From Oikopleura dioica (taxonomy: Eukaryota; Animalia; Chordata), in the NCBI GenBank assembly GCA_907165135.1, contig OU015569.1, positions 2,480,001 to 2,544,000 on the forward strand: a stretch of 64,000 bases of DNA, in the 5' to 3' direction. The notes beneath the pieces are model-generated. The model was not told the DNA's origin. It saw only the letters and a list, made by a program, of their open reading frames with translations, and ran no database searches. Position numbers and translations under genes: made by a program. Shown in pieces: positions 27,501 to 44,900 of this stretch (its first letter is position 1; every line of letters starts with the position of its first letter).

Positions 27501-30500
27501 TTGCTGGTGTCATTCTCGAAGAAACTGGCGAGAAGATTACTCTAAATGAAGCTTGCAGAAGGAGCCTGCTCAGAAGAGGAACCACCCTAGAACTTCTTGA
27601 GGCTCAAGCCGCTGTTGGGAGCGTTATCGACCCCATCAGGTGAATATAGAAAAACTGATAGTTAAAAACTCAATGCGATGTTTTTGTGCAGTTTCTCATT
27701 ATTCTTTAGATCGGAGAAACTTTCTGTTGAAGAGGCGATAAGCAGGAATCTTCTTGACCCCTATCAAGTTGATGCTCTTCGCCGAGCAGAAAGAGCTGTT
27801 ACCGGCTGGCCAGATGCTCGTGCTGGAGGAAAACTTCTCTCACTTTTTGAAGCTATGCGACGAGGCTTAGTGGCCGACACTCGAGCGATTCGTCTTCTGG
27901 AAGCTCAGATTGCTACGGGAGGGCTTATCGATCCCCGAGCCAACCATCGAGTTCCAATTAATGTGGCTTTCCGACGAGGACTCTTCGACTCCGAAACCAA
28001 TCAAAAACTAGAAGACCCCACTGACGACACCAAAGGCTTCTTCGATCCCAATACGCAAGAAAATCTTACCTATATTGAGCTTATCCGACGCTGCCAAAAA
28101 GAGCCAGAAACTGGCTACCACTTTTTAGTGCTGCGTCCAAAGCGACGCGGCGAGGGACGCGCATCAAGAAGCTCACTGTGGAACGACACGCGTAATCAAT
28201 CCCGTGAGAGCCCAGCAAGCCGTAATTACAATCACTCTAATGCCCGATGCAAGACCCCAGAACATGTTACCAAATCAGCATCATCTACCTCTCAATCAAT
28301 CAAATCGAAAAGCGCCTCTAACTTGCCTACAACGCACCAATTGACAACGAAAAAGTTACGACGCGAAGATATCATGTTCACTGTCCCGAGTGGAATAGTC
28401 AGACTCACCGAGCTCATCGACGCTGGTTGTACTGACGAGACTGCTGTGCGCGAACTCGAGTGTGGAAAAATCACCATGGAAAAATTCCGACACTCGTTAG
28501 AACGATATTTGTCTGGTTTGCCACCGATCGGAGGAGTCAAAATCACCCATGGAAGTGGAGTGACTGAAATCCTTTCTATCTATGATGCGCAGCGTCGCCA
28601 ATTGATCGATCAGGATCTGAGTTTCTATCTTCTTGAGGCTCAGGCAGCGACTGGCGGACTTTGTGGACTTGGAAGCGCCAAGCGATACGATCTTCATACT
28701 GGATTTGAACAAGGCCTCATCGATAGAGAGCTCATTAGCGATTTGACTAATGGACTTTCTGCTGTGCTCGGTTTTGTTGGAAGAAATCGCTCACTCGTCT
28801 CGACTATGGAAGCAGCAAGAATCGGAATGATATCCGAAGACGACGCTCGCCGGCTTTTGTTCACCCAAATCGTTACCGGCGGCGTTTTCAATATTGCCAA
28901 TGGATTCCGATTGCCTCTTGACGTCGCCAGCAAGAGAGCGATGTGGACACGCAGCTGGGACAACATGGCTCCACAGTGCTACGAGTTCAACCAAAAAGCA
29001 ATGACTTATGAACAGCTTTGCGCCAAGTGCGAAAAAGATGAAAGTTCGCGATGTCTTCTTCTTCCTATTGCTGGAAATAAAAAGCCAGTTGGAAAACCAA
29101 TCCAATCCATCATGGGAACTCCTCTTAGCTTCTACCACCGTAAGTTTTTTCATAATGTATTCTAGTCACTCTTTTATCTATCGTTTTTTATCAGCTAGCT
29201 TGGATTTTTTCAAATCTAATCGAAAAATTCAGAGCATAAAATGATCTCTGACGAAACTTACGCTGCTGCTCAAGCTGGCTTCATGTCTGAAAGTGACTTA
29301 GAACAGCAGCTCTCTCGTCGACTCATTGGTTGTGAGCCTATTGCCGGCATCTTTGTCGAAGGTCGCCTGATGTCGATCTGGGATGCTTCTCGACAAAAGC
29401 TTATCAAACCTGGAAATGCCCTTGAGCTGATGGAGGCCCAAGTTGTGAGCACTGGTGCTCTCATCGATGCGATATATGGAAAGCTCACGGTCAACGATGC
29501 AATTCAAAACGGAGTGATTGATATGTCCACTGGCGATGCCCTCAACAGATCCCGAATTGCTTACAAAGGCGATAAGGATAAGAACTCTTTGAAGAGCATG
29601 ATGAACAAGGGCACCCTTGCTGAATCGAAAGCGCTCAGACATCTCGAAATTCAGATCGCATGTGGAGGCGTGATAGGTATTTGGAAGCTGAGATAGCAGT
29701 TTCTTCATGAAGTGATTTTAGAACCAAGAACTGGGCGATACTTTTCCATCCCACAAGCATTCGAGGCTGGCCTTTTGGAAAAGAACGACCTTCAAAAGAT
29801 TAGAAAAAATAAGTTCTTCACGGATCCAGATCGAGAGGAGCGACTGAGTTACTTAGAGCTATGTTTGAGATGTGTAAAGGACGACACGGGCCGCCTGTTC
29901 CTGCCAGTTCACCGAATCAATCTTGCCAAGACAAAACGATCAAAGCCACGAAAGAAGAAAATAGTCGTTGTTGATCCCAGCACATCCGAAGAGCTCAATT
30001 GCCAAACCGCGTTCAGCAGGGGTCTGATCGATGAAGAATTCTTTGTCCAGCTGCTCACAGAAGAGGGCAAGTCCCAAGAACAAATCGACGACATTCTCTA
30101 CGGAAAAAGCAAATCCATTCCTCTTACTGTAACGCATGAGCGCGAGTTAGGGTTATGCAGATACAAAGTTATTGAAAGAAAATCTTCGCATGCGGAATGA
30201 AAGAAAACGCACGTGAATAAGTAGCATGAAATTTTTAAATGCTTGATTACTTCGGCCTGGGCTCGGCAAACTGTGTAGAAAACCTGAGTCAGGTTTCAAA
30301 CAAGCTAAAATAAGCTTTTTTAAAAAAAGCCGCTAAGCTTTTAATTTTAGAACTTTTAGAACCTGACGCAGGTTTTCTACCCAGACTACCGAGCGCAGCT
30401 TTAGGAATTCTTTTATTTGAAAAATTTAGGTTAGGTTTAGATAATAAGAGATAATGAGTAGTTGTGCCACAGATTAGTTAATGCATCAAGTATCACCCAC

Positions 30501-31438
30501 TAACAGACCTCGATCGACAGCCGCCGCGATTCTAAATCTGACATTTTCTCTTGCACATCTTCCTCCGTTGATCTCGGATCAATTGCTTCCACACCAATGG
30601 GTTCTCGCGAACCTACCCCATCGCTTGGAGTTGTCTCCGCCGCTGAGTTAGAAAACCGTCTCCTGAAACTAGCAAAAGACGGTTTCCGCGTTGCGATCGG
30701 AGCAATCAAGGATGAGACTACTGGAGAAACAATTTCGATTTCCCAAGCGACTGATCGAAAACTGATTGACTCTGTTACCGAGCAGCGATTGCTCGAAGCA
30801 CAAGCAGTTACTGGAGGAATCATTCTTCACAGCTCCGGCGCGCGGCTCACACCGAATGAAGCTCTGAGCGCCAAGTACATCACCAACCGAGCGTTTTCGA
30901 CACTGACGGAGGCGTACAAAGCATGGACTGGCTTCTCAGATAGAAGAACTGGCAAACGCAATTGCTTGAGTCTGCCTGAAGCTCTCAAAAGCGGCTCAGG
31001 AAGTTATGAAGCAATGACGAGATTCTTGGAATATCAAATTGTTCTTGGAGGCGTGTATGACGTGCAGAAGCGAGAGTTCCACTCGCTACATGAAGCAGTC
31101 GATCATGGCTTGATCGAGAGTCGAAAGGCGGAGCGTTTAGCTGACTTTTCGGTAAAAATGTACTTTCCCCATCTATTTTAATTGGTTTCTAGCGTCACTC
31201 GAGACAGCTGACCGATCCCCGAACGAATCTAACGACGACGTATTCAAAGTTGGTTGACGCGGCCGAGGTCGACAAGGAGGGCATTCTCGTCCTCTCTGCC
31301 TGGCCTCGCAAGCAGCGCTCCCTCAAGCTTGACTCCGGCCTCACCGTTCGCGCTTCTTCAATCGCTTCATCCCGAGCTTCTTCCCGCGGCACTTCGCCAA
31401 CGCGCCACCTCGACACCTTCGATATTGGCCAGATCTAA
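18579..31438 (+). CDS. MACF1/DST/PLEC-like: Spectraplakin locus, plectin-like output: CH1-CH2 actin-binding domain, plakin domain with SH3, rod, plectin-repeat domains with linker, SR-rich tail
   Basis: [104 protein letters not shown]; SH3 end TLPPPNKLA; plectin repeats [14 protein letters not shown]; linker [17 protein letters not shown]; tail [12 protein letters not shown]; stop at 31438. Confidence 0.93.
19754..19917. mobile_element. MITE family A copy in a CH1 intron
   Basis: GCAACCTGTGTAGAAAACCTTAGTCAGG...CCTGACTCAGGTTTTCTAAACAGGTT; just after the donor at 19747. Confidence 0.85.
20309..20686 (+). CDS. Alternative first exon(s) of the spectraplakin between CH1 and CH2 (MGGCCSK..)
   Basis: The ORF from ATG 20309 splices in phase 0 through a 44-nt GT-AG intron (20687-20730) into the CH2 exon VEEIVIEG; contains RKRVTF. 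Confidence 0.7.
30256..30399. mobile_element. MITE family A copy in a plectin-repeat intron
   Basis: Both TIRs present; flanks CTTCGG and TTTAGG match at 4 of 6 positions. Confidence 0.85.
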
Positions 31439-31792
31439 CGCTTACTAACTCAAATATATATTTATAAATTTAACATTATTTTCACTTTGGCCTATTTTCA
31501 ATTTACGTTCACCTCAACCTCTGTCTCTTCTTTTTGTGACTAACTGTGCATGGAATTAAATACTGTATCTATTTATTACAGTGGCTAACTGTATATTATT
31601 TTATATATTTGAGTACTGATCAATCTGAGATCTTCGTTTCTCTGAACCTTCTTTTCAACCATTTATTCGAAAAAAATCCAAAAAAGCAAGAAAAAAAAAA
31701 GAAAATTCCTTCAGTGTTACGAATGGCTTACTACTATGACTACTTCAGTACTCTTATCTGTGAATACTTTGCTTCTTGCGAGTTCTGTGATG

Positions 31793-31798
31793 AATAAA
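31793..31798 (+). terminator. Candidate polyadenylation signal of the plectin-like transcript
   Basis: AATAAA about 355 nt after the stop at 31438, in an AT-rich UTR-like stretch. Confidence 0.45.
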
Positions 31799-31884
31799 CT
31801 ATTCAATAATCTCAAATAAGGCAATCAAATGTTTGATTTTTGATTCTAAGACGTTCAGGTATTCGTTATGGAGATTTTTATTGG

Positions 31885-32060
31885 TCTGGGCTCGGCAACC
31901 TGCGTACAAAACTTGAGTCAGAGTCTGAAGTATCTCAAAAGAAAAGCCGCGTAGCGGCTTTTATAAAACGAGGCCACGAAGCGTCTTCGCCAGAATTTAA
32001 AGATTGATTGAAAAGATGAGAACCTGACTCAGGTTTTGTAGACAGGTCGCTAAGCCCAGA
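31885..32060. mobile_element. MITE family A copy
   Basis: Both TIRs and the central hairpin present; flanks TATTGG and AATTTG match at 4 of 6 positions. Confidence 0.9.
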
Positions 32061-32639
32061 AATTTGTATTGAATATGTTCTAATCGAACGTAGTCACTAA
32101 CTCTCATCGCCACTGTTCATTACTTTGAATGTAGAGTAGTCCCTTGAAAATGACAGTAGGAAAAAGGATGATACTGGTAGATTTCGCTTTTCCTTGGCGA
32201 GATAAAATTTATATGACAGTTTATTCAGGATAGCGTCTTAGCACGGTAACGCCCGCGCCGAAAAAAAATCTTCCGAAGCATTTAGGCACACACTGTGTGC
32301 CCCAAACACGTACCAGGGCAAAGTGATGGATCATCACGTGTGGTCATCATCATTTTTTTGTGCGGTCAGCTTTTTTCACTGATCAGAGGGTGCCTTTGAA
32401 ACTAGAGAAGGGAAAGAAAACGAAACAGAAAGAAGACGGATTTATTTAGGACGAAATTGGGATGGCGGAACGGAAAGTAGCCGAGATAGCCAGGTGGATT
32501 GACGAAACTAAGGAGAAGAAAAATGATCTAGTCACGGTTCCAGCACGATTCTGACTAATTTTTGCTAGAATTCCGATTGATACTAAAGTAGAATTATGGC
32601 TAAAAATAGAGAAACCGTTTGCGGCTTCGAGCAAAAAAA

Positions 32640-32822
32640 GACGCACGTGTCCCAAACTAGAAGTATTTTCACTTTTGCTCTCGCGCGCCACTCTCGCTTT
32701 CCGGGTAAAGCGGTAAGTTTAAAAACACCCCCGTGGGTGCGTGCCTTTGATCGTTAATTCGCCCGGGTGTCCCAAACCAGAGGGATTTTTTGGTGTCCCA
32801 AACCAGCGGTTTTTACTGTATA
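32640..32822. repeat. Possible Tc1/mariner-like terminus with GTGTCCCAAAC repeats
   Basis: GTGTCCCAAAC occurs three times and the stretch ends in TTTTTACTGTA-TA; no matching left end found. Confidence 0.3.
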
Positions 32823-32911
32823 CAATGTTACATTGTCAATGTATACTGTACATAAATTAAAATATTAATTATAATGTACAAAAAAGTAATGCATCAAAAC
32901 CGAAAGAAGTC

Positions 32912-35900
32912 TTGCCTGATACGCTGAAAGCAACTGGCGATGTAATAATTGAAATCGAGGAGATCATCGAAACAGTCGTCTCCCGCCGTCCCGTCGTAAA
33001 TGCCGCGGCAGGGTTTGCAGTGGAAGTGATCGAAAAATACGAACGCAGCGCGAAAATGACGTTAGACGATGATCGGAAACAAACGAGGAACGGATTCGGA
33101 AGCGCGTTCCCTTTTACGTTATCGTGATTTCCGATTTCTCCCCGGAAACTTGTGTTTTAACGCAATTCCTGCGAACTCAGACAAAGCTCTCCAGACAGCA
33201 GTCTGGAGAATGTGTTCACGCTCATCCTTGATCGAAATCAAGGACGAGTAAGGTGTAAATTTATTTATGAATTTGAATTCGAATCCCTTATACAGTTCTC
33301 GCCTGTCGAAGCTTGAATCGAACACGGAAGAAATGAAACGCAACTTTGAGAAACTTCTGGCTAGCTTTTTGAGCATGCAGGAGCAACTGAAATCCCATCT
33401 GTCAAAGTTACAATCGGAGAGGGATCTTTCTGGACTACAATCTGAAATGGAATCGATGCGATTATCTTTATTAGCTCTCAGTGATGGACTAAAAGTGACG
33501 CCCCCCGACGATCTCTTAGAAGCACAGACTAATTTTACAAAGCTCCAGCAACTGGCAAGGGAGTTGAAAGAAAAGAAACCAAAAGTGTTGGAAATTGCAG
33601 GTAATTATTTTTCAGTTTATTATTTCAATGCCTTGAGGAGGACGTAATCTAACAGGAAAGTGATGCGATATAAAGTCTTTTCTAGGTTTAGCGATAGCCT
33701 TTTTAGGTTTTAAGGAATAATTTTAATCAAGTATTATTTTAATTTATAAATCATCAAAAACCTGCCTCGAAGTCCAATTGTGGAGAATTGATCTTCTAGT
33801 TCTGGATAAGAAGACCTTATCCAAGACTCAAAGTTTTGCCATTTTTGGTCTGAAATTTTCCTTTTTGAAATCATAGAAGACTCTTTTGAAAATTCTTTAT
33901 ATCTCTTTTACCTGTATCTTCATTTCGGATCTTAAAGCTCTGGCAATATTGGATCAAAAAGCTGAAGGTTATCCAAAAGAATCTCTTACTCAATCGCGCC
34001 ATGGCAGAGACTAATAGCCTTTTTGTCAGATTGGAAAGCTTTATACTCGGCACAACTGTCTTTGCGTGCCTTGGTGATGCTAACGAGTTAAAACACGTGC
34101 GGATCACAGTAGAATATTAATGCTAAATGGAGCCCTGATTCGGAGAATTTTGTCACTTGCCAAGTATAATTCAAAATATAGAAACGGAGATGCGTAATTT
34201 ACACAAACAGATTAAATTGGAACATATCTTTATTTTTTTCTAGTTTTGTAACCTATCGTGAACAGAAATAATGGGTCAGCGTTGAATAGCGGTAGTACTG
34301 TGCTAAATTGCTGAAGGAGATTTGAAAGAACTCTCCGTTCTCGGACACGTGATGTCTAAAGATCGTGCTCGTAGTTAAAAGCTCGTAGACCTCTTCTTCC
34401 GATGTGCTTCTTTCGCCACCAAGGAGGATGATCTTCTCCCACACTTCGTTAAAAGTAGCGGCTGAGCGTTGCAGTGCCACGAAAGCATGCGTGACGAGCG
34501 CAAGTGCCTGACTGTCGCTAGAATCGACACTTGACTCGCTAGTTGAAGCTGTGAAACCGTGGTATTCGTGGACGCTCGGGCTCGACGCTGATGATTGAAT
34601 GCCCTCAGAGCCACTGTGACTCAAGCAGGGTTCAGAACTGGCTCTGGGCGGTTGGTTCTCGAGACGTCCTCTTCTGAATTCGCCTTGTTCAAAGTTGAAG
34701 ATTTCTCTGATGTCAAGCGCCATCGTGCCATTCGTGCAAGTCGGAGATGCATTTCTCGTTTGGCGTTTGAACTGCGCCTCAGGAATTTTGGCAACTTCTA
34801 CTGTCCAGAATCCATGGGAGCCTGTGCTCTTCTGTTTGACGAAAAACTCGCGCTGGACAAGATTGTGTCGTACAGAATCCCTCCAAGCTGATTTAGACGA
34901 GGCCAGTGCGGGAAAAAGCGCTTCGAGCTTTGAGTAGATTTGCCCCAGGCGAGCGCGTTTTTCTGGAAAAGTTCGAATCACGAGCGCGGTTAACACGCCG
35001 TAGGAAAATGGAGGCTTATCAGCTTTATTGTACACGCGGGTCTTCATCTTTTTACTTTTCAAAATTCGATATCAAAATCGACTATTTTTTCAAAGTTGTA
35101 TTCTTTGTTTTTGGATAACTGATCAGTACGATTTGTCTTTTTATTTTCGGAAGGGCGCCCGAAATGACGTCGGCGGCGAAGACTCCCGCCTCCCGAGCTA
35201 GACGGAATAGCTTCCTCCACTGCCTCAAGCTTAACTCGTATCAGAATCTTCACATATTTTCTCTCAAGAAATTTGCCAATTATGGAACATCGGACAAATA
35301 CATCACATAGGAAAAAATTATAAAACATATTCTCGTTGAGAATTTCGATTCTCTTGGTCTAAGATCCGATTATTCATCTGATCTAGTATGATGGCTGGAT
35401 ACTTACTGAAGTATAAGTCCAAATATGGTCAGGATTCTTAAATAAGAGAATATTAGGGGTACTCAATATTATTTCCTGACCCAGGCTTTTTACTCAGGTT
35501 GCCGGGCCCAGCCATAAGATAAGGGATTTTCTACTTCAGTCTGGGAAGTCTGGTCACAACTGGAAAGTCGGAATGGAATCAGTATCAGTTCAGAGGTGAT
35601 CTTTAGGAATTGGAAAACAGGTTATGAGTGGAATGTTAGGGAGAATCTTGTAGTTTCCCATTGAGACTTCCAATGTAGACATTGTCTGAGCAGTAACTTT
35701 CCGAACATCCTCAAAAAGTTGTTTTCAAGTCTGATTTCTGGATTCTCTTCAGTAAATATTCTACTTTAGCTACCTCCCGTTCGACTTCGCGAAACCAAGA
35801 CTTGAGTACTGCTGAAACCCAGCAACTTCACCTCGACGCGTCAACCCTGGAAGATCTTCTCCATGAAACAAGCACGACCGCAAGTGAAGCCTCGCGGTCT

Positions 35901-38900
35901 TACTCTCATCTAATGGGAATTTTGAGTGACTTTGAACAGGTAAAACTAATGCTCTTCATTAGCGCGTCCGATTCAAGCCGATCGCGGTTGTTTACTAGAA
36001 TATTAAAAATGGGTGACCTTGACTTTCTTGGTGCTTAATTTAGTGGAGCAGTGGCCATAGTCCCGCCCGCGGGGGCTCTTGGCATCTATTCTAATCGTTA
36101 ACGTTGAAAAATTCTGATATATTCTAGCTCTTCCTTACTCCTAAATTTGCCAAACAAGTTTCTTTTTTTTCCTAACTGGATTACTCCTTTCTGGAGTAAT
36201 TGGAAGTGACAGGAGCCGCCCTTCCTCAAACGCGGTAAGAAAGAGCGAGAGACCTTCAGGTTGAAGGGTGGGCCGCAGGTGCACGAAAATGCAAACAGTT
36301 TGGTGCACCCACCTGCACCACCAAATTGGCCAATGAATGTACCGAGCCTCTCCACGGCGCAAAAAAGGAACTCTCTCTCTCTCTCAACCGCGGTTTACCA
36401 AAACACCGCCGCCAGAATTTATCATTCCGACAAAAAACCTAAATTCTAGAGACACGAACTACTACAGAGCTATCTAGAAGAAGTCGAAAAAGAGTTAGAA
36501 AACGTCTCAGCAGGTAAATTTACTGAACGCGCTTCACTAATCGTCTAGTACAATAATACAACTAGTTGATGAATAATCATTTTTTTTATTTTTTAGTAAA
36601 TTATTCAAAATTTAATTTTATTTATTCTTATTTAATTTTGAATATAAAAGCTATTTTTCCTCTCATAGCAGAGTTTTCAAATTTTGATAAAAAAAAATAA
36701 ATTCTACCGCGATTCTCATTGCTGACTGACTACTGACTAAAATTTGCAGAAAAAAAAAATTTTCAAAAACAATTAAAATTCCCGCAAATATAAGTCAGTA
36801 GGAATTGATAATCGCGGTATATCATATATTTTCTCACTGAATAAGATATCATAATAGTGGTAGGATTCTTGTCCAAATATTTCCGCCAAGTCCTCCATAG
36901 TGTCCGCTAATAATCCTTGTCTCGACAGATGACGTCCTGTTGACGTGTGTGAAGGAGTTTTCCGTAAGGAATCCGTTCGAGTGAAAATGCCATCATCAAT
37001 AATGTCAGACTGACCGGATTTAGTTTTCCATGCGAATTCTTTACTTTTTTTTCAGTAAATGATGTCCTGAGCGACGAGACGGATTCTAACAATGTTTCTC
37101 GGGTGGAAAAACTTTCGCGGCTGAAGGACCTCGTCAGGGAGCTAGAAGGCGAGAAGAAGGCAGATCTGAAGCTGCTGGAAATGAGCAAGGAGAAGTACCA
37201 ATTGGCTAGCAAGGAATTCCGCCGCGCACTGCAGCTCGACGACGCCGGGCAACTCTTCGGCGAAGACGGACAACGACATCGCCTAGTCGACTCCAAATAC
37301 GAACGCGTCCAGCAAAATTTCGGTCTCCTCTCAAACAAGGTACAATTAGAGCTACGTAAGCCGCAACCGGAATTCCGAGCATTTTGACGAGCAAAATTGG
37401 CAGCGCAGCGGAATTTTTTATCGTCCATTTCTGAAATCCTAATGAGCAAAATCTTCGTTAGCATCCAACCGTTTCCACGGGGGAAATTTTAATTTCCAAG
37501 GTTTGAGGTAGACAAAGATCCCAAAATCAAAATATTGATGTCATTACGTATTTGCGAATATAATGATTTACGAAAATCGCCACTCATATAATATTTTTAC
37601 AACCGCTTTTATTCAGTTTATAATACCGGAAAATACTGCATGGTGAATAATCGTCGCCGTAAATTTCGCTCTGCGCTAAAAGGCGCATTCATCAAAATGA
37701 CTATTTGACAAAGAGAGTTTCCTTCTTCAACTGAATGCCTGAGTCCCTTTTCGCTTATCAGTAGCTCCTAAAACTACACGTGAGCCAAGTCAAGCACGCA
37801 GCCAATGCTGGCACGTGAGAAAAGGCGCTACATTTTTTCCAGAGAGAATGAATTGAATCAATGTTCCTAGGCCCGGTTTCATGCAAAATAAAATGCTCAT
37901 CTTTTTGACGTCCTTTTTTTGATGCCGATTGAGAATTTCTCGATGATGAGCAGTTTTGTCTGCCGCTTGCAGACGGCGTTTGCGTCATTTGGCTATATTG
38001 GAAAGGGTCTTTTCGTAGAAAAATCATTTAATAATTTTAACGACCTTTCCCAACCTAAAGGGCTTTACCTCTTCTTTTCGGACTTTTGCTCATTCTTCTG
38101 CCGATTCATTCTTTTTACCGTCGGAGTGGACCAAGAGTGAGTCCCTTGTTCTGCGCATTTGTCAGGAGAGCATCGCTTTCTTATTTCTAGCAGGTGTCAT
38201 TTTATAGGTTAAGGAAGACAAAGACGGTGGTGACTCGGCTTGGGCGAGAGTGATTTTACGAGTTTAGAGCAAAATTTTGATCCTTTTTCCTCCGCGGATC
38301 AGCACTAAACAAATAGCGGCAGCTACGTGGGAGAATGTCAACTGAAAATACGAAGAGACCTTGAACGAACTCGAGCTCTGAGCTGTGCGATAGTGTGAAG
38401 CTCTCTTTCTATCTATCCCCACGGGAGGTCCCGTCTCTGCTCGCACGCATGCTGAGGAAGCCACCTTCCCTTTTTCAAATACCTAACCTCAGCTAGATAC
38501 CCTCCTTCTTACAACGTTACAAAGGAGCTCAGCCGCGCGGCAAATCAAACCACTGGCACGAGCAAGGACCAACTGTCCCTGGTCAGTTGCTCAGCGCCAA
38601 AACTGCAAAACTCACTTCCCTGCCACAAGAAAATTAAGAAAGAAAAAGACAGAGAGGAAAATTGAATGACTCATGGGAAGAAAAGCTTCTGAAGCGTGAA
38701 GATATACACTAGAGGTACTACAAGAAGAACAATCTAAGAAGAAGAAAGCATGGGAGTGTGCGCCTCCAAACCAAAGGCACGGTCAATATTTACAGTAACT
38801 CTTTTTGACTGAATTCGATTTAAAAATATGTAGAATCTAATGGAAGTTTAATTTAGACGGCTTTAGATAATAATAATTATTTTCTAAATTTCAATCAATT

Positions 38901-41900
38901 TAATTAATTACTTTCAAAATTTTTTGTTTAAAGTCAAAAATAGCATAATTTTCTAAAATAAATTTCTCGTTTTTTTTTCTTTCCATCGATATCTAAATTT
39001 TGGAATCTAAAAGAACCAAAAACACGATAATAAAAAACGCTGCGTGGGCTAAGCTAAATTAGAATCACTGTGTCTCTTTCTAATTTTCTCTCCATTTTAC
39101 TCTGATGACCGTAAAATAGACCGATGAAATCGACATCGAAGAGCCTCCAAAGACGATCAAGTCAGAAGAAGGATCCGATTCTCTGGATCAGAATTACTCG
39201 TTGAATTCTTATGCTGGCGTCTCATCAGTTTTGGGTTTTTCCTATAATGAAAAGGGTCTTAATCAACGAAGAGGCTTCTTAGATAAACAAAGAGCCAACT
39301 GAGAGAGAAAAAGGCCAACCCAAAATTAGATCAGATGGAAGAGTCACTCACAAGGCAAAAAATAAGTGCATTGGAATCGTTAGAAGCCTACATTAAAGAC
39401 GACATTAACGCAAGGTCCATTGGCGATTATTTTACAGTCAATGTAATAGTTAAGAAGCAGATCCTGCGATTTGATCGAAGGAGAAGCGCTAGAATCGACA
39501 GCAAGTGTCGAAATCAACCGAATCAATGACACAGTCGCCCGTCTTCGCCAATCCATCTCGACATTGGATTTGATCAGCGAACCAGCGCTCGTCGCTAATG
39601 CCAGTCCTTACGAGAAGCCGCTCTTTGCCTCGCCATTTACAAACTCGGAGCTTTCGCTCGAAAGCATCACCAGTGATCTCGGAGGCTCAATAAGCGCCAA
39701 AAGCCCCTCACACTTGAAATATCAGTTTCTTGTCGACAGCCGAGTGCCACCAACATTGTCCCCTTTATCAGCACGCAGCGCTACTAGGACTTCTTCGGAA
39801 GGAGAAAACTCGCAGCAGGAAGAGGCAATTATACTTATCTATAAGCAGGACTTGGCTCGACAACATGCTTAGAAAATCTGAGTCAAGTTTTAAAGGGTTT
39901 TAATGAAAAGCCGCTTAGCGGCTTTTTAATAATCGAGGCGCCTTCGCAAAATTACTATTTCAATCTATTTTCAGATTCTGGCGAAGCCGCTTTAGGTTTA
40001 CTTAGGTTTTAACACATGTTGCCAAGCACAGAAGCAGGAGAAATAAAACAAACAAAGCAGAAATCCAGAATTTTCCTTTTAAAAATCTATTCAGGCGGCG
40101 GAAAAATTCCAAGCTTATGGAAATGTGCTAGAAGTCTGGAAAGAGTACGAAGGAGTTGAGCTCAACTGTAAATCATGGCTACAAGAAGCGGAAATTCGAC
40201 TTTCTGTTATGGGAGCGCCAAGGTAAGCGCTAATTACAGCCAAAAAAAGTGGCAATTTTAATCAGTTTATTGTTTTGGGATAAACGCGCCCGGGTCACTA
40301 GACCTATGTTTTCCTTCAAACACGTTGTTCCGAGAAGCTAAAATTTATAATTAACGGGAAATCATAGCACTGACTTGGCAACTTTGAATGAGCAAATTAT
40401 CGACGCTAAAACTGCGCGGCACGATGCTGATGGCCACAAAAACTCCTTCAAGCGACTGGATCAAACTGCACGGGCGATTGGTCGACTTGGGGACGAGCTT
40501 GTTTCTCATCGAGACCAGCAACGCGTCTCCCGTCAAACTCAAAAACTGCGCCAAGGCTTCCAGGCCCTGTCGGATAAAATCGACATGAAGGTGAAAGAAC
40601 TAATGGAGATGGGCAACGAATTGCAGCAACTCCAGGAGAAAATCACAAACGCAAACAATGAAGCAGAAGTCGCCGCGCGAGTCCTAAAGGAAGTTTCTCG
40701 AGCTGCAAGGGCTGATAAAAACTTGCTAGAAGAACGACGAGATAGGCTGAAACTCTCGCAGACGGAGATCAAACGGGCAGAGCGTGAAATCAAGGAGTCA
40801 GGGGAAAAAGCAGCGCTCAAGGTTTTGTCAAAATGTGGCGAAGAAAACGCACGTGCAGTTCGAGAAAAGCTCGCAAGCGCTCAAAGACGAACAGAAGGCG
40901 TCGTCGAGGATATCGAAAAAGAAGAGCGAAAACTTTCAAGAATGATTGAGCTTCTAAGCGACTTCGAAAATCACGCTGATCACTTGGAGAATGAAATCCA
41001 AACATTGCAAAATCCAAAAGCCTGTGAAGTGAAACTCGGCAATTTGCGCGAATCGGCGTCTTACCTGCTCGATTCCGGCAACTTCTCGGATCACAGTCCC
41101 GTCACACTGAGGCTTGATCGCTTGAATCGTATGCTGGCGAATGCTTCGGAGCAGAGCAGAGAACGAAGGAATGCACTTGAAAACGAAAAGCGACGGGAAA
41201 CAGAGCGTGAGCGCGAGTTTGAAAATGTCAAAATCGAGCTCGGTCAATTCGATGTCGTTTCTATTCAAAGCCTTGCGAATCTGCCCGCTGACCTCAACAA
41301 GCTTGACAATTTGATAACAAAGTGGGAAAATCTCGAGCCCAAGCTCGAGTACTTAGAAAGCACCTCTGAAAGTCCAATTATGCAGCCAGGCTCGACTGCT
41401 TCTCTTCGCAGAAGAAGCAGAACAAGAAGACAGGGCGGCACACTCCCGAGGAATTCAGGAAGACTTTCTGGAGCGTCTGCTTCCGGTGTTGAAGGTTTGA
41501 GATTGAAGTACGAGAGCATTGGAGACAGACTAATCAACACAAGAAACGTGGGCCAAATACTTCTAGAGCAGCTTGAAGTGTGGCATTCGAACCAGGTGAA
41601 AGCAGAACACATCATGAAAAATCTGGCTGACTCGTCATCTTTGATATCAGCGATGGGAGACGTGGCGGAAGCCGTGCGTTCCGGCAAAGCTGTTATCACT
41701 ACATGTCGCACCAAACTAGATAACGAGCCCAAGGACCTTCCGAAATTAGAGTCGGAAGTCGACCAACTCCAAAAACAATTTAACGATGTGCAACAGGAAA
41801 TCATGGACGCGCGATTGTCCAAGGATCAAAAATCAAAAGACATTGATCATTGGCAGCAGCGCTTTTAAATCTCTCCGACTGGACATCCGATCAATGGAGT

Positions 41901-44900
41901 CTCATGTCCGTGCTGGGGAAGATTTCGGCTGATCCGGCGATTCTAGAGCCACAGAGGCAGCAAGTTGATGCGCTGCTGAGTGAGTTTAACTCGCGAAAAG
42001 AGCGATACAACCAGCTTCAAGCGGACTGCCTATCTTTGAACGATTCGAGCAAAAGTCAAGATATGAAACAACTGAGCTCGAGGTGGAATGAATTGGAGCA
42101 AAAACTTGAAGAGCGTAAAATAGCAATCGATGAGGCGCTAAAATGCACGCGCGAGATCGAGCAAGAAACTGCCAAGCTACAAGACTTCCTAACTACTGTT
42201 ACTGCTGACTTAGCAATATCAAGCAGACTGCCACCAGTTCCCGATTCAGTTGAAGATTGCCTCAAAAAACTCAAACAGCACCAAACCCAAGTGACCGAAA
42301 TGGAAAAGAGTGCCAAACTCGCCCAGCAAGCAGCAGAATTTCTTGCACAAGTTGCCTCTGGAGCTGAAAATCATGGCAACAAATCGCACTCGGTCGGACA
42401 AGCACTTTTCATTTCAACCAAAAAGTTGGACGAAAAAATCGGCACTCTCACAGAATTGCTGGCTAACATCGATGAAGCGTATAAACTGAGATCTGAGTTG
42501 TTCAACTCGATCAATGCGATTGAAAAGGGACCAACATACGGACGGGAAGAAATTAACGCTCTGAGATCAAAGTATGACGAGCTCGTTTCGCTTGTAGAAG
42601 ACATCAGTGAAAACACGTCGCCGATTCGTAATAACTCGCTACGAGAAGACAAGCGCTCCATTCAGCGAAAGATCAAAGCGCTAGAAACGGGCTTAGACCA
42701 GCGTGAAAGGGACGAGTCACGAAGAGCGCGAAAACAGGCGCAGCTGCTGTCATTTATTAACGAACGGGAACAGCAGATTGCGTCCACACATGAGGGCGAG
42801 GCTCAACCTGACGCCATTCACCAGAAAATCACACTCGTCCAAACTCTTAAGGATGAACTCACCGCGCGCATGGGCGAACTGAAGGCTCAATTCGGCGGCC
42901 CCACTGATTCACAAGTTCAACAGAGCTTCAACAATCTCCTCGAGAAGAGCACCGATAGAGCTAAGGAGCTTCAGGATGCGAAATTGCAAGCAGAAGAGCT
43001 CGACGGACTCCTCCATGATTTCAACGAATGGGCGGAGGACTCCCTGGAAAAGATTCTCGCTGCTACGAACTTAAAATCGCCCGAGACTCTTTACGAAATG
43101 CAGGTTTGTCACAAATAAGCTTTTTCTTACAGGCTCAGTACTTGATACATTTTTGAAAAAGTTGGGTTATATTGGCAAATGTCGAGCTCATCCCTCAGCA
43201 GAGTGGCGCAGCGGAAGCGTGCTGGGCCCATAACCCAGAGGTCGGAGGATCGAAACCTCCCTCTGCTATATACCCATATTTTCTTTTTTTTTCTCATAAC
43301 AAAGATTCTAGAGACCTCCTACTTATTATTCTTTTAGACAATGATGGAGGAGTGCAAAGACCAACGCGGTGAAATCGAGCTTATTTGCTCTCTGCTAAAA
43401 GGTGTCGAACCAGCCGGAAAACGATGGGGAGGAAGACCTTTGGAGCAAGTCCACTCTGATGCTCTGCACACTCTCGATCGCATCAAGAGCTTGCTGAGTG
43501 AGCGAACAGAAGCCGCCGACGATGCTCTCAACCGAGTCAAGCGCTTCGAGGAGTCGATAGAGAAGCTCACCGCTTGGTACAGAGAGATCGGCGACGACCT
43601 TGACAAGATCAAATCGGCGCTAGACTTGACGGAGCCGGAAGTAATCGATAAAATGGTCGACGATGTTGGTAGAATCTCCACCATTCTTCAATCGAAAATG
43701 GCGACACGGGAAATTATGTCCAGAGAGTGTCAAATGATGAATTTCGATTTGGCTGAAGGGATGAAGGATAGTGTCGAGGAGAAGCTATCCAAACTCGAGA
43801 GCACAGCTTCAGAAACAGAACTGAAATGCAGAGAGCTTCAAAATCTTCTTGAAAAGGTTCAACGCGCGAGCACGAAATATGCAGAAGTGCGAGACGAGCT
43901 TTTGCCATGGGTTGAAGACATGGAGGTGCGGTTAGATCAATTTGACGACGTTTCCCTACCAGATGAGAGCCTCATTGAGGATCTCAGCCAGATGAGTGAA
44001 GAGATTGCAGAACGACGTCTTCTCGCTGACCGCCTTGTTCTCACCGCTGATAAACTCGCGCCTTTAGGAGCGATTCAAGTCAAGAACGAAGCAGCACAGA
44101 TCTCGAGCAGATATTCCGACATTCGCGAACGCTGTCGACAGCGTAAGAGAGAAACTCAACAACTCGCAATCGAACATCAGCAGTACTCGGAGCGTCTTAA
44201 CAATCTGAACAACGCTTTGCAGCGGATTGATGAGCGTCTATCGAATAGCGATCGCCCCGAATGCAACGTTGAAAAGTGCAGAGCCGCAATGGCGGATTTG
44301 AATCAACTTAGCAAAGAATTGGACAAGCTAGAAGCTGCGAAAACGACGCTTCAAAAGACCGGTCAAAGCCAACTTAGCGATCCCAAGATAAATTCAGAGC
44401 TGGCAAAGATCGATTCGACATGGGATCATCTCCAGAATACGCTCAAGAACAAGCGCGATCGATTGAGACAAACAGAAGCTGCGTCTGAGCGATTTTGGGC
44501 GAAAAACTCTCAGTTCCAGAATCAACTGGATCAGCTTGAAGGCGAGCTGCGAGAGATCAAGCCAACGCACGATGGTAAACGGGATATGGATCAGTTCGAG
44601 AAGAAAATTACAGCAATGGCCGGCTTGAATAAGAAAGTATCTGACACAGCCCGAGATCTTGGCTCATTAGGCGAAAATTCCGAAGCGCTACGCATGGCGC
44701 GAGAGGGTCAATCACAGCTCGATAGAATCGCCAGGAATATGCAACAAAAGCAGAACGAGATCGAAGCGGCTGCCAAAGAGCACGAGAATATGCAGCGAAA
44801 AGCGCGAGAGGCACTTTCGTGGATGCAATCAGCAGATGTGCGCTTGAAAGCACAGGGAGAGCCAAACTCTCCGGACGACTGCCGGGAAAAACTGAGAGTT

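Follow-up and report, generated by a model that had tools for sequence, protein, structure and literature searches.

The window analysed here, 64,000 nucleotides of the Oikopleura dioica assembly GCA_907165135.1 (contig OU015569.1, positions 2,480,001 to 2,544,000; C2:2,480,001-2,544,000 in the 64.28-Mb, 19-contig genome that was searched), carries on its minus strand a short forkhead gene that lies within a spectraplakin gene of the opposite strand. Taken together, the data make it likely that this nested gene is a functional, selectively maintained member of the tunicate FoxH clade, consisting of one exon lodged antisense in a spectraplakin intron, that its product is devoid of recognizable Smad-docking motifs and that its C-terminal part is, most likely, a decayed forkhead domain.

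In vertebrates FoxH1 is the DNA-binding partner that gives Nodal/activin-Smad2 signaling its target specificity in mesendoderm and left-right patterning and is, in addition, a maternal pioneer factor; O. dioica reportedly patterns its left-right axis without Nodal. No published description of an O. dioica FoxH gene was found in the literature.

The nested gene and its orthologues

The open reading frame (ORF) is uninterrupted and encodes 264 amino acids from a conserved ATG; the 269-amino acid version of the ORF list, which begins at an upstream TTG, is merely mechanical. The Pfam family Forkhead (PF00250) is matched at residues 11-85 with an E of 9.4e-16 and 58 bits, the cut-off being 27. A word-based BLASTP search of 5.8 billion proteins returned only four O. 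dioica-type proteins, i.e., the nested protein and three relatives of 256-260 amino acids that are 60-67% identical to it, one being an O. dioica “unnamed protein product” and the rest coming from JGI and ENA marine assemblies; the class was therefore settled with an exhaustive search of representative proteins.

The nested protein and its three orthologues are colinear from the “MKTRVYN…” start to an invariant “HYFCSR*” end. Since this colinearity extends from Met1 to the same terminus, the ORF is complete and no 3′ coding exon is missing, which also answers the question of whether a further 3′ exon might encode a Smad-interaction motif (SIM). The intronless forkhead ORF described in the initial annotation is thus confirmed as one open frame, colinear in the three orthologues.

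The closest public O. dioica protein is approximately two-thirds identical to the nested protein, the ORF DNA is ~64% identical (i.e., ~36% diverged) between the lineage of the window and the others, and synonymous sites are saturated; the level of protein identity and this saturation indicate that the source of the window is an O. dioica-type larvacean belonging to a deeply diverged cryptic lineage. In the Norwegian assembly (GCA_000209535.1) an identical fox protein is found on two scaffolds, FN653079.1 and FN653044.1, which probably are allelic haplotype scaffolds rather than the outcome of a duplication.

Assignment to the FoxH class

When the Protein Data Bank (PDB) was searched with phmmer, the three top matches were FoxH1 of zebrafish, frog and human (71, 66 and 58 bits, respectively), followed by FoxL2 with 51.6 bits, and the alignments with FoxH1 extended beyond the canonical domain into “FWTVEV.KIP…KRQ”. 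The exhaustive HMMER search, which covered 1.84 billion representative proteins, yielded 3494 matches; the best named ones are FoxH1 of reptile, bird, fish and frog, Phallusia FoxH-a, Ciona savignyi H2ZDW9 and a Styela clava protein, FoxF ranking below the FoxH proteins. By summed score the top of this list is occupied by “uncharacterized” Schistocerca proteins (P0005-P0007 and P0009) of 660-3580 amino acids with 2-6 or more forkhead domains, an odd family without relation to the nested gene.

A maximum likelihood tree (IQ-TREE with the site-heterogeneous model LG+C20+F+G4; 96 rows, 134 columns), whose outgroups were only the Fox proteins present among the top 150 matches and the Fox genes of the window's own genome, contains a FoxH clade of 55 rows supported at 100/100, in which SIM-bearing vertebrate FoxH1, hagfish, molluscan FAST-like and tunicate proteins, including ascidian FoxH-a, are united. 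Inside this clade the tunicate FoxH subclade that includes the nested protein has a support of 99/97, the nested protein and its orthologues form a group at 100/99, and this group is joined at 99/96 with P0008, a metagenomic protein described below. In a phylogeny that comprises both ascidian and vertebrate FoxH the nested protein therefore falls inside FoxH and not in another Fox class, so that its assignment as a FoxH-class transcription factor of the tunicate FoxH clade is well supported, and the earlier designation “FoxH-like” is borne out by the best PDB and named-protein matches, by the tree and by the fold.

The features that distinguish FoxH1 from other forkhead proteins have been defined structurally and consist of an extended fold, with an ordered N-terminal loop and a long structured Wing2, and of substitutions in helices H2 and H3 that read GG/GT, namely Asp in place of Asn in H3 and Leu or Ile in place of the canonical Tyr in H2 (Pluta et al., PMC9701222). 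In the nested protein, in which no region precedes the DNA-binding domain, the N-terminal loop keeps Y6, K8 and K11, while S15, “KRQ” and D112 are conserved as well. Its H3 reads “WRDSVRHNL”, with Asp57 replacing Asn, and the ten-residue stretch that contains this Asp is identical to zebrafish FoxH1; Wing2 is long and bears a tail motif of the tunicate type, and Wing1 is 7 residues shorter than in FoxH1. The AlphaFold2 model has a predicted local distance difference test (pLDDT) score of 90-98 over the forkhead domain, and the six best Foldseek matches of this model are FoxH1 crystal structures, aligned over 113-124 columns with TM scores by target of 0.77-0.82; only ~80 columns are aligned with other Fox proteins. 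The nested protein would be expected to bind, as a monomer, FoxH-like sites of the TGT[G/T][G/T]ATT family. At the H2 position, where it has Tyr38, the residue is Leu in ascidian and vertebrate FoxH, Leu or Val in the C5 paralogues and variable in molluscan FoxH. The Tyr and the short Wing1 probably shift the affinity or the specificity of the nested forkhead; by the logic of PMC9701222, Tyr38 should weaken the bidentate Arg-guanine contact, and DNA specificity may for this reason be intermediate.

Absence of recognizable Smad-docking motifs

A consensus of the vertebrate Smad-interaction domain (SID), “…LPTSYtKy.pPNvVAPPS…DLD.mlq.VPPNKSVFD”, was derived from 28 vertebrate-type matches; it contains the FM motif “PPNVVAPPS” and the SIM “VPPNKSVFD”, VPPNKS(V/I)(F/Y)D being found in the 28 matches. 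The nested protein and its three orthologues contain no PP[NQ][KR], PPN or PPQ, the score of the nested protein against the hidden Markov model (HMM) of the SID is at noise level, and in the six frames of window 30000-40000 there is neither PPNK nor a match to the SID-HMM; the absence of a SIM, to which the initial annotation had drawn attention, thus extends to the orthologues and to the surrounding DNA. P0008, too, has no PPNK, PPN or PPQ.

The vertebrate SID profile is silent in every tunicate, and this could be read as a sign that ascidians lack a SIM too; this reading is ruled out by conserved ascidian PPN motifs. Indeed, the ascidian FoxH-a group keeps “VPPNQKPFG” and “GPPNITW”, and a second ascidian group keeps “PPNVV(A/S)”, which matches the vertebrate FM core. 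Since ascidian FoxH proteins retain FM/SIM-like motifs of the PPN type, the absence seen in the larvacean proteins is a true difference and not a tunicate-wide state. The nested protein, endowed with a DNA-binding domain and no such recognizable motif, would bind DNA on its own, possibly in the manner of a pioneer factor, and would not need docking of Smad2/3.

What, then, is left of the pathway? To judge from the title of a 2020 article by Onuma et al., listed in PMC8220140, Nodal has reportedly been lost in O. dioica. The genome contains ~9-10 loci for Smad MH2 domains; two of them are of the BMP R-Smad type (“YHRQDV…SSVS*” and “YHRQEV…TSVS*”) and two, at C5:3155101-3155589 and C4:14232476-14235252, start their L3 loop with the Smad2/3-like “YRRQ”, a crude typing that relies on one short motif. 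The MH2 loci at C4:9032694-9033491 and C1:14452291-14452968 belong to the same set of four, and the “YRRQ” locus on C4 looks like two copies in tandem. This genome may thus still possess a Smad2/3-type branch, and, given the “YRRQ” loci, loss of the whole pathway is not established. Nor is the earlier view of the nested gene as the FoxH retained after loss of its pathway, in view of these data and of two more FoxH-class domains on contig C5; its repurposing, which the initial annotation also suggested, is plausible.

The linker and the C-terminal winged helix

The forkhead domain, whose pI is ~10, is followed by a linker in which pLDDT falls below 50 (residues 140-172) and then by a compact C-terminal domain with a net charge of -1 to -4. 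In the alignment of the latter (residues 172-264) 53 of the 93 columns are invariant, and the full-length model folds it confidently, with a pLDDT of ~90, as a winged helix. Foldseek ranks the forkheads FoxP3, FoxN1, FoxH1 and FoxO1 highest for this domain, all of these matches being weak (E 8e-3 to 0.1); the VIA exhaustive search gives ties at Z 7-8 among the generic winged helices of ASFV I73R, Dcc1, Fur, H1/H5, FoxP4 and FoxM1, and the fold neighbors in the Atlas include FoxP3 (TM 0.67) and FoxN2 (TM 0.66). Pfam offers no family for this domain at E up to 10, the 1.84 billion representatives hold no sequence relative past residue ~177, and neither a paralogue in the genome, by sequence, nor a language-model neighbor in the Atlas was detected. 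An HMM of the domain misses the C5 paralogue; a comparison with ALTIFAFVALKQDSVTG of C5 gives E 0.018 in the same register.

These data suggest, with a probability that we consider good, that the C-terminal domain is a degenerate second forkhead domain and an innovation of the larvaceans, a second forkhead-like domain not being detectable in ascidian FoxH. This pseudo-forkhead would descend from a larvacean FoxH ancestor with two forkheads. Because the DNA-reading residues R-H-N are replaced by Y-E-L and the domain is acidic, its role is presumably in protein contact or autoregulation and not in DNA binding.

Related larvacean FoxH genes

Among the 37 forkhead matches in the genome, two that lie in tandem on C5 (C5:13,079,828-13,080,043 and 13,081,435-13,081,668) belong to the tunicate FoxH clade. 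Of these, one, the first, is sister to the group made up of the nested gene and P0008 (94/79), and the second, which has a long branch, groups with the Phallusia LOC778613-like protein in a FoxH-b-like group (99/96); as judged from their sequences, FoxH-class genes number three in this genome. The second, degenerate domain of the C5 locus is spread over three conserved exons (HKPPFTTAALTIFAFVALKQDSVTGWQIAEKVS, IRNCFPYWNERTKLCSLLLQITAALTNLP, ALFSQDRLKVAHWTLN…) which, compared one by one and unjoined, are colinear with columns 10-26 (E 3.7e-4), 41-49 (E 0.015) and 82-95 (E 0.17) of the forkhead profile. In the genome of the window a stop codon follows “…MASRFGNF” at this locus. A read-through of exon 2 as coding sequence (HICINECPKIFHRF…) was rejected, orthologues placing the start of the intron after “AEKVS”.

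In the C5 locus the first forkhead is followed by a degenerate second forkhead-like domain, and the first helix of the latter (ALTIFAFVALKQDS) matches the C-terminal domain of the nested gene. Like the nested gene, the C5 locus has no PPN motif, only “MPPQSLF” being present in the C5 DNA examined. Unlike the nested gene it has several exons, a Leu in H2, a Wing1 of normal length, a second domain that keeps KPPF and FPYW, and a third, FoxH-b-like forkhead; furthermore, it lies outside the spectraplakin gene.

P0008 is a protein of 378 amino acids encoded by a single ORF of a 1.5-kb marine metagenome contig (k119_291146; ENA ERZ27294083), presumably from another appendicularian. It is the sister of the nested gene, which is its best reciprocal match in the genome of the window and with which it shares the Tyr in H2, “ADKPPFSY”, “KIPE”, “REVFNFDTG”, the absence of PPN and the sequence of a forkhead followed by a degenerate forkhead. 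On the other hand, it is only 41-43% identical to the nested protein, its linker is longer, a tail is present at its C-terminus, and its second domain is less decayed, retaining PPF and FPFW; residues 227-339 can be aligned with 82 columns of the FoxH forkhead profile (hhalign E 4.9e-5; HMMER i-E 0.004).

Selection and conserved non-coding elements

Pairwise ratios of non-synonymous to synonymous substitution rates (dN/dS) are 0.07-0.23 for the whole ORF, 0.04-0.15 for the forkhead, 0.1-0.45 for the linker and 0.2-0.3 for the C-terminal domain, dS being saturated between the lineage of the window and the others. By this measure of sequence change the nested gene is under purifying selection.

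Upstream of the gene (Table 1), the 52-nt block contains a CRE-like half site (ACGTCA), a GC-rich box and an A-rich, TATA-like element, and its core has no second copy in the 64-Mb genome; as it includes a 1-nt indel, the block is non-coding, and it can be regarded as the putative core promoter of the nested gene. The upstream element TATTCCGTCT is likewise invariant in the four-lineage alignment. Downstream, the AATAAA hexamer recurs in the corresponding position of the Norwegian gene and is absent from the other two lineages. Besides the island listed in Table 1, more islands, among them GTATAAAG and TTGCCAGAGCTT, are present at ~33930-34060, between the 3′ end of the fox gene and the upstream host exon. 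The indels beside these islands are not multiples of three, and no RNA reads of the diverged lineage considered below fall there; the islands (33930-34091) could represent a 3′ enhancer, part of the 3′ untranslated region of the fox gene or an element of the host intron.

Table 1. Coordinates and properties of the nested gene, its domains, its surroundings and the C5 locus
Feature	Position (window, unless C5)	Strand	Remarks
Complete single-exon coding sequence of the nested FoxH-class gene	34253..35047	-	264 codons, followed by the stop (34253-34255)
FoxH-type extended forkhead DNA-binding domain, residues 1-125	34673..35047	-	PDB matches, alignment, AlphaFold2 model, tree
Ser-rich, mildly acidic linker, residues 126-175, predicted disordered	34523..34672	-	islands P.R.SSEPCL and EYHG; pI 4.6-5.4
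Acidic winged-helix domain, residues 176-264	34256..34522	-	H-S-H-H-S-S plus C-terminal helix
Near-invariant upstream block, 52 nt	35130..35181	-	…TTCGCCGCCGACGTCATTT(C)GGGCGCCCTTCCGAAAATAAAAAGACAAATC; 83-134 nt 5′ of ATG; four-lineage alignment
Second invariant upstream element	35274..35285	-	CCATAATTGGCA, with CC(A/T)6GG CArG-like core CCATAATTGG; putative function
AATAAA, polyadenylation-signal-like hexamer	34229..34234	-	19-24 nt after stop
Conserved non-coding island 3′ of fox gene	34072..34091	.	TGGTGATGCTAACGAGTTAA (plus strand); 20/20 identical to Norway
Inferred host intron holding the fox gene, ~2.17 kb	33601..35769	+	GT donor after 33600, AG acceptor before 35770
Upstream flanking host exon, coiled-coil/spectrin-like ORF	33267..33600 (provisional 5′ limit)	+	
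Downstream flanking host exon	35770..35940	+	ends CAG|gtaaaa; conserved antisense in Norwegian contig L034:20-190
Tandem FoxH-class locus	C5:13079828-13081668		FoxH-type forkhead (exon ends …NTKG), Wing2 exon, degenerate second forkhead, FoxH-b-like third forkhead

The host gene and the nesting

Plectin repeats are encoded by plus-strand ORFs at 27678-31181 of the window, and a weak Spectrin match (23.3 bits, under the Pfam cut-off of 29.9) is found on the same strand at 41850-43118. At the Norwegian locus, where the host is annotated as separate Plectin and Spectrin models, the fox orthologue is antisense and has a Plectin-repeat gene model on one side and a Spectrin/EF-hand/GAS2 model on the other; the host can thus be identified as a spectraplakin, and Norwegian O. 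dioica shares the nesting.

The splice sites on either side of the fox gene read GCAG|gtaatt at 33600/33601 and ttag|CTACC at 35769/35770, and the phase-1 join of 33600 to 35770 produces a GCT codon and leaves the frame open. Both flanking host exons are conserved in sequence. Host-exon regions are the only ones touched by the 1-4 partly fitting reads (90-95% identity) found in each RNA run of the diverged lineage, namely those at 33.0-33.5 kb (33001-33501), in the bin 35673-35839 and at 36.0-36.7 kb; no read of these runs spans the 33600/35770 junction. The location of the fox gene inside a 2.17-kb host intron is thus a well-supported inference from GT/AG borders, compatible frames and conserved exons, in keeping with the antisense position within a spectraplakin intron that had first been proposed. 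The nested position dates from before the split of the O. dioica cryptic lineages.

Alternative explanations

Several observations weigh against the interpretation of the nested gene as a functional FoxH gene that has lost Smad docking and acquired a pseudo-forkhead. Concerning the C-terminal domain, its direct match to the forkhead profile, aligned to H3-S2 (“SVRHNLS.N.CF.KV”), is not significant (E 0.1), and the same holds for the comparison of its “TIFRHH…HYF” with “DIFIPI…NRKFYVFNFDAI…HYF” of P0008 (E 0.35); furthermore, the isolated model, computed from 4 sequences, has a pLDDT of 71, so that forkhead kinship relies on transitive, in-register weak matches and on the fold. Concerning the forkhead domain, the nested protein, its three orthologues and P0008 have a Tyr in H2 (Tyr38, “GQIYSKL”) where FoxH1 has Leu or Ile. 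Concerning Smad binding, short linear motifs can diverge past recognition, and the absence of PPN is no proof that Smad is not bound. Finally, four RNA runs of a ~36%-diverged lineage bearing the same species label gave no reads on the ORF, although these runs are uninformative on transcription in the lineage of the window.

As to the origin of the gene, the initial annotation had taken the lack of introns as a sign of retroposition, and a processed retrocopy of a multi-exon FoxH of the C5 type, which would have acquired a promoter of its own, is indeed quite possible, albeit somewhat less likely than not; it concerns solely the origin and is compatible with the interpretation given above. An intron at FPFFK|G is common to the genes of Styela clava (OZ123514.1; FoxH-a-like) and Electrophorus (CM023693.1; FoxH1), which suggests that the ancestral chordate FoxH had at least this intron, and the Styela gene has two further ones, after …CFKKV and within Wing2. 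The nested gene has none of them, nor does P0008, its sister from another organism, which also consists of one ORF, whereas in the sister C5 paralogue (94/79) the same layout of forkhead and degenerate forkhead is split by at least 3-4 introns. However, the FPFFK|G intron is not found in the C5 paralogue either, whose introns occupy positions shared neither with ascidians nor with vertebrates and may be later gains, and several other Fox genes of the genome have uninterrupted forkhead domains. Neither a poly(A) remnant nor a target-site duplication can be recognized around the nested gene, though in an old insertion such marks would erode. Intron turnover is very high in O. dioica, and loss of introns before the duplication, followed by gain in the C5 gene, fits the data equally well. 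The step from intronlessness to retroposition is, therefore, weakened.

A second alternative is that the nested protein is still a cofactor of Smad2/3 in activin/TGF-beta signaling, responding to another ligand and contacting Smad by a surface other than the canonical one, e.g., by the C-terminal winged helix or by the SSEPCL and EYHG islands of the linker. The ~9-10 MH2 loci that have been kept, two of them with the “YRRQ” start, and the conservation of domain and islands that have no assigned partner speak in its favor; yet these Smad loci are typed on a single short motif, the SID profile finds no match, and FM/SIM-like PPN motifs are missing even though ascidian relatives keep them. To our knowledge, there is no precedent for a winged helix that docks on MH2 in place of a SIM, and this alternative is considered unlikely.

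Far less probable is that the gene is a fast-evolving member of another Fox class (for example FoxF, FoxL or FoxQ) that long-branch attraction has pulled into FoxH. The group of the nested protein has a long stem branch (~1.3 changes per column), the H2 Tyr is canonical and Wing1 is atypical; nevertheless, the 100/100 and 99/97 supports were obtained under a site-heterogeneous model, the extended-fold matches are confined to FoxH1, and derived FoxH features are found outside the core, i.e., the N-loop Tyr, the H3 Asp, the Wing2 “IP…KRQ” and the tunicate “D(L/I)x(D/E)(I/V)F(D/N)(L/F)xxG”. 

Finally, that the ORF is a non-functional relic, untranscribed or decaying and kept only by chance or because the host intron is itself constrained, is the least credible explanation of all, since the silence of the RNA runs and its listing as a mere “unnamed protein product” in the Norwegian genome are set against a colinear frame that has stayed open in four lineages despite saturated synonymous sites, the low dN/dS of both the forkhead (0.04-0.15) and the C-terminal domain (0.2-0.3), and conserved start, stop and upstream block.

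Evolutionary implications

With a functional, Smad-motif-free FoxH gene as the preferred interpretation, a broader scenario may tentatively be envisaged, in which larvacean FoxH was rebuilt: an internal duplication would have given rise to a forkhead followed by a pseudo-forkhead that replaced the Smad-interaction domain, the protein would have been uncoupled from Nodal/Smad2, and one copy would have become compact and intron-lodged, with a deeply conserved promoter of its own. If this were true, the acidic pseudo-forkhead would provide a Smad-independent factor, possibly one of the maternal pioneer type, with a new module for protein interaction or autoinhibition, and the combination of a forkhead with a decayed forkhead would be an uncommon way for the domains of transcription factors to evolve. 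The nested gene and the two C5 FoxH-class domains would offer a natural experiment on FoxH uncoupled from Nodal, and the larvacean system could allow the pioneer/DNA-binding role of FoxH to be separated from its role as a Smad cofactor. For expression studies, the near-invariant putative promoter block provides a handle.

Comparison with known systems

Vertebrate FoxH1 (FAST1/FAST2; structures 7yz7, 7yzg and 7yzb; PMC9701222) is the best match of the nested protein in both sequence and fold. The two proteins have in common the N-loop Tyr, an H3 of the form “W(K/R)DS(V/I)RHNL” and a long Wing2 with “IP..(L/F)KRQ”. They differ in that the nested protein has neither FM nor PPNK SIM, carries Tyr instead of Leu/Ile in H2, has a Wing1 shorter by 7 residues, begins directly with the DNA-binding domain and ends with an added acidic winged helix; furthermore, its gene consists of one exon, whereas that of Electrophorus FoxH1 is interrupted at FPFFK|G.

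The ascidian proteins of the FoxH-a and FoxH-b-like types used for comparison (Phallusia mammillata CAB3246903.1, Ciona savignyi H2ZDW9, Styela clava LOC120342102 and the Phallusia LOC778613-like protein) are larger (390-1050 amino acids), have Leu in H2, keep “VPPNQKPF”, “GPPNITW” and “PPNVVAP” and, unlike the nested protein, display no detectable second forkhead; the Styela gene has three introns in the forkhead/Wing2 region and the nested gene none. What unites the ascidian proteins with the nested protein is their common tunicate clade (99/97) and the Wing2 tail “D(L/I)x(D/E)(I/V)F(D/N)(L/F)E.G”.

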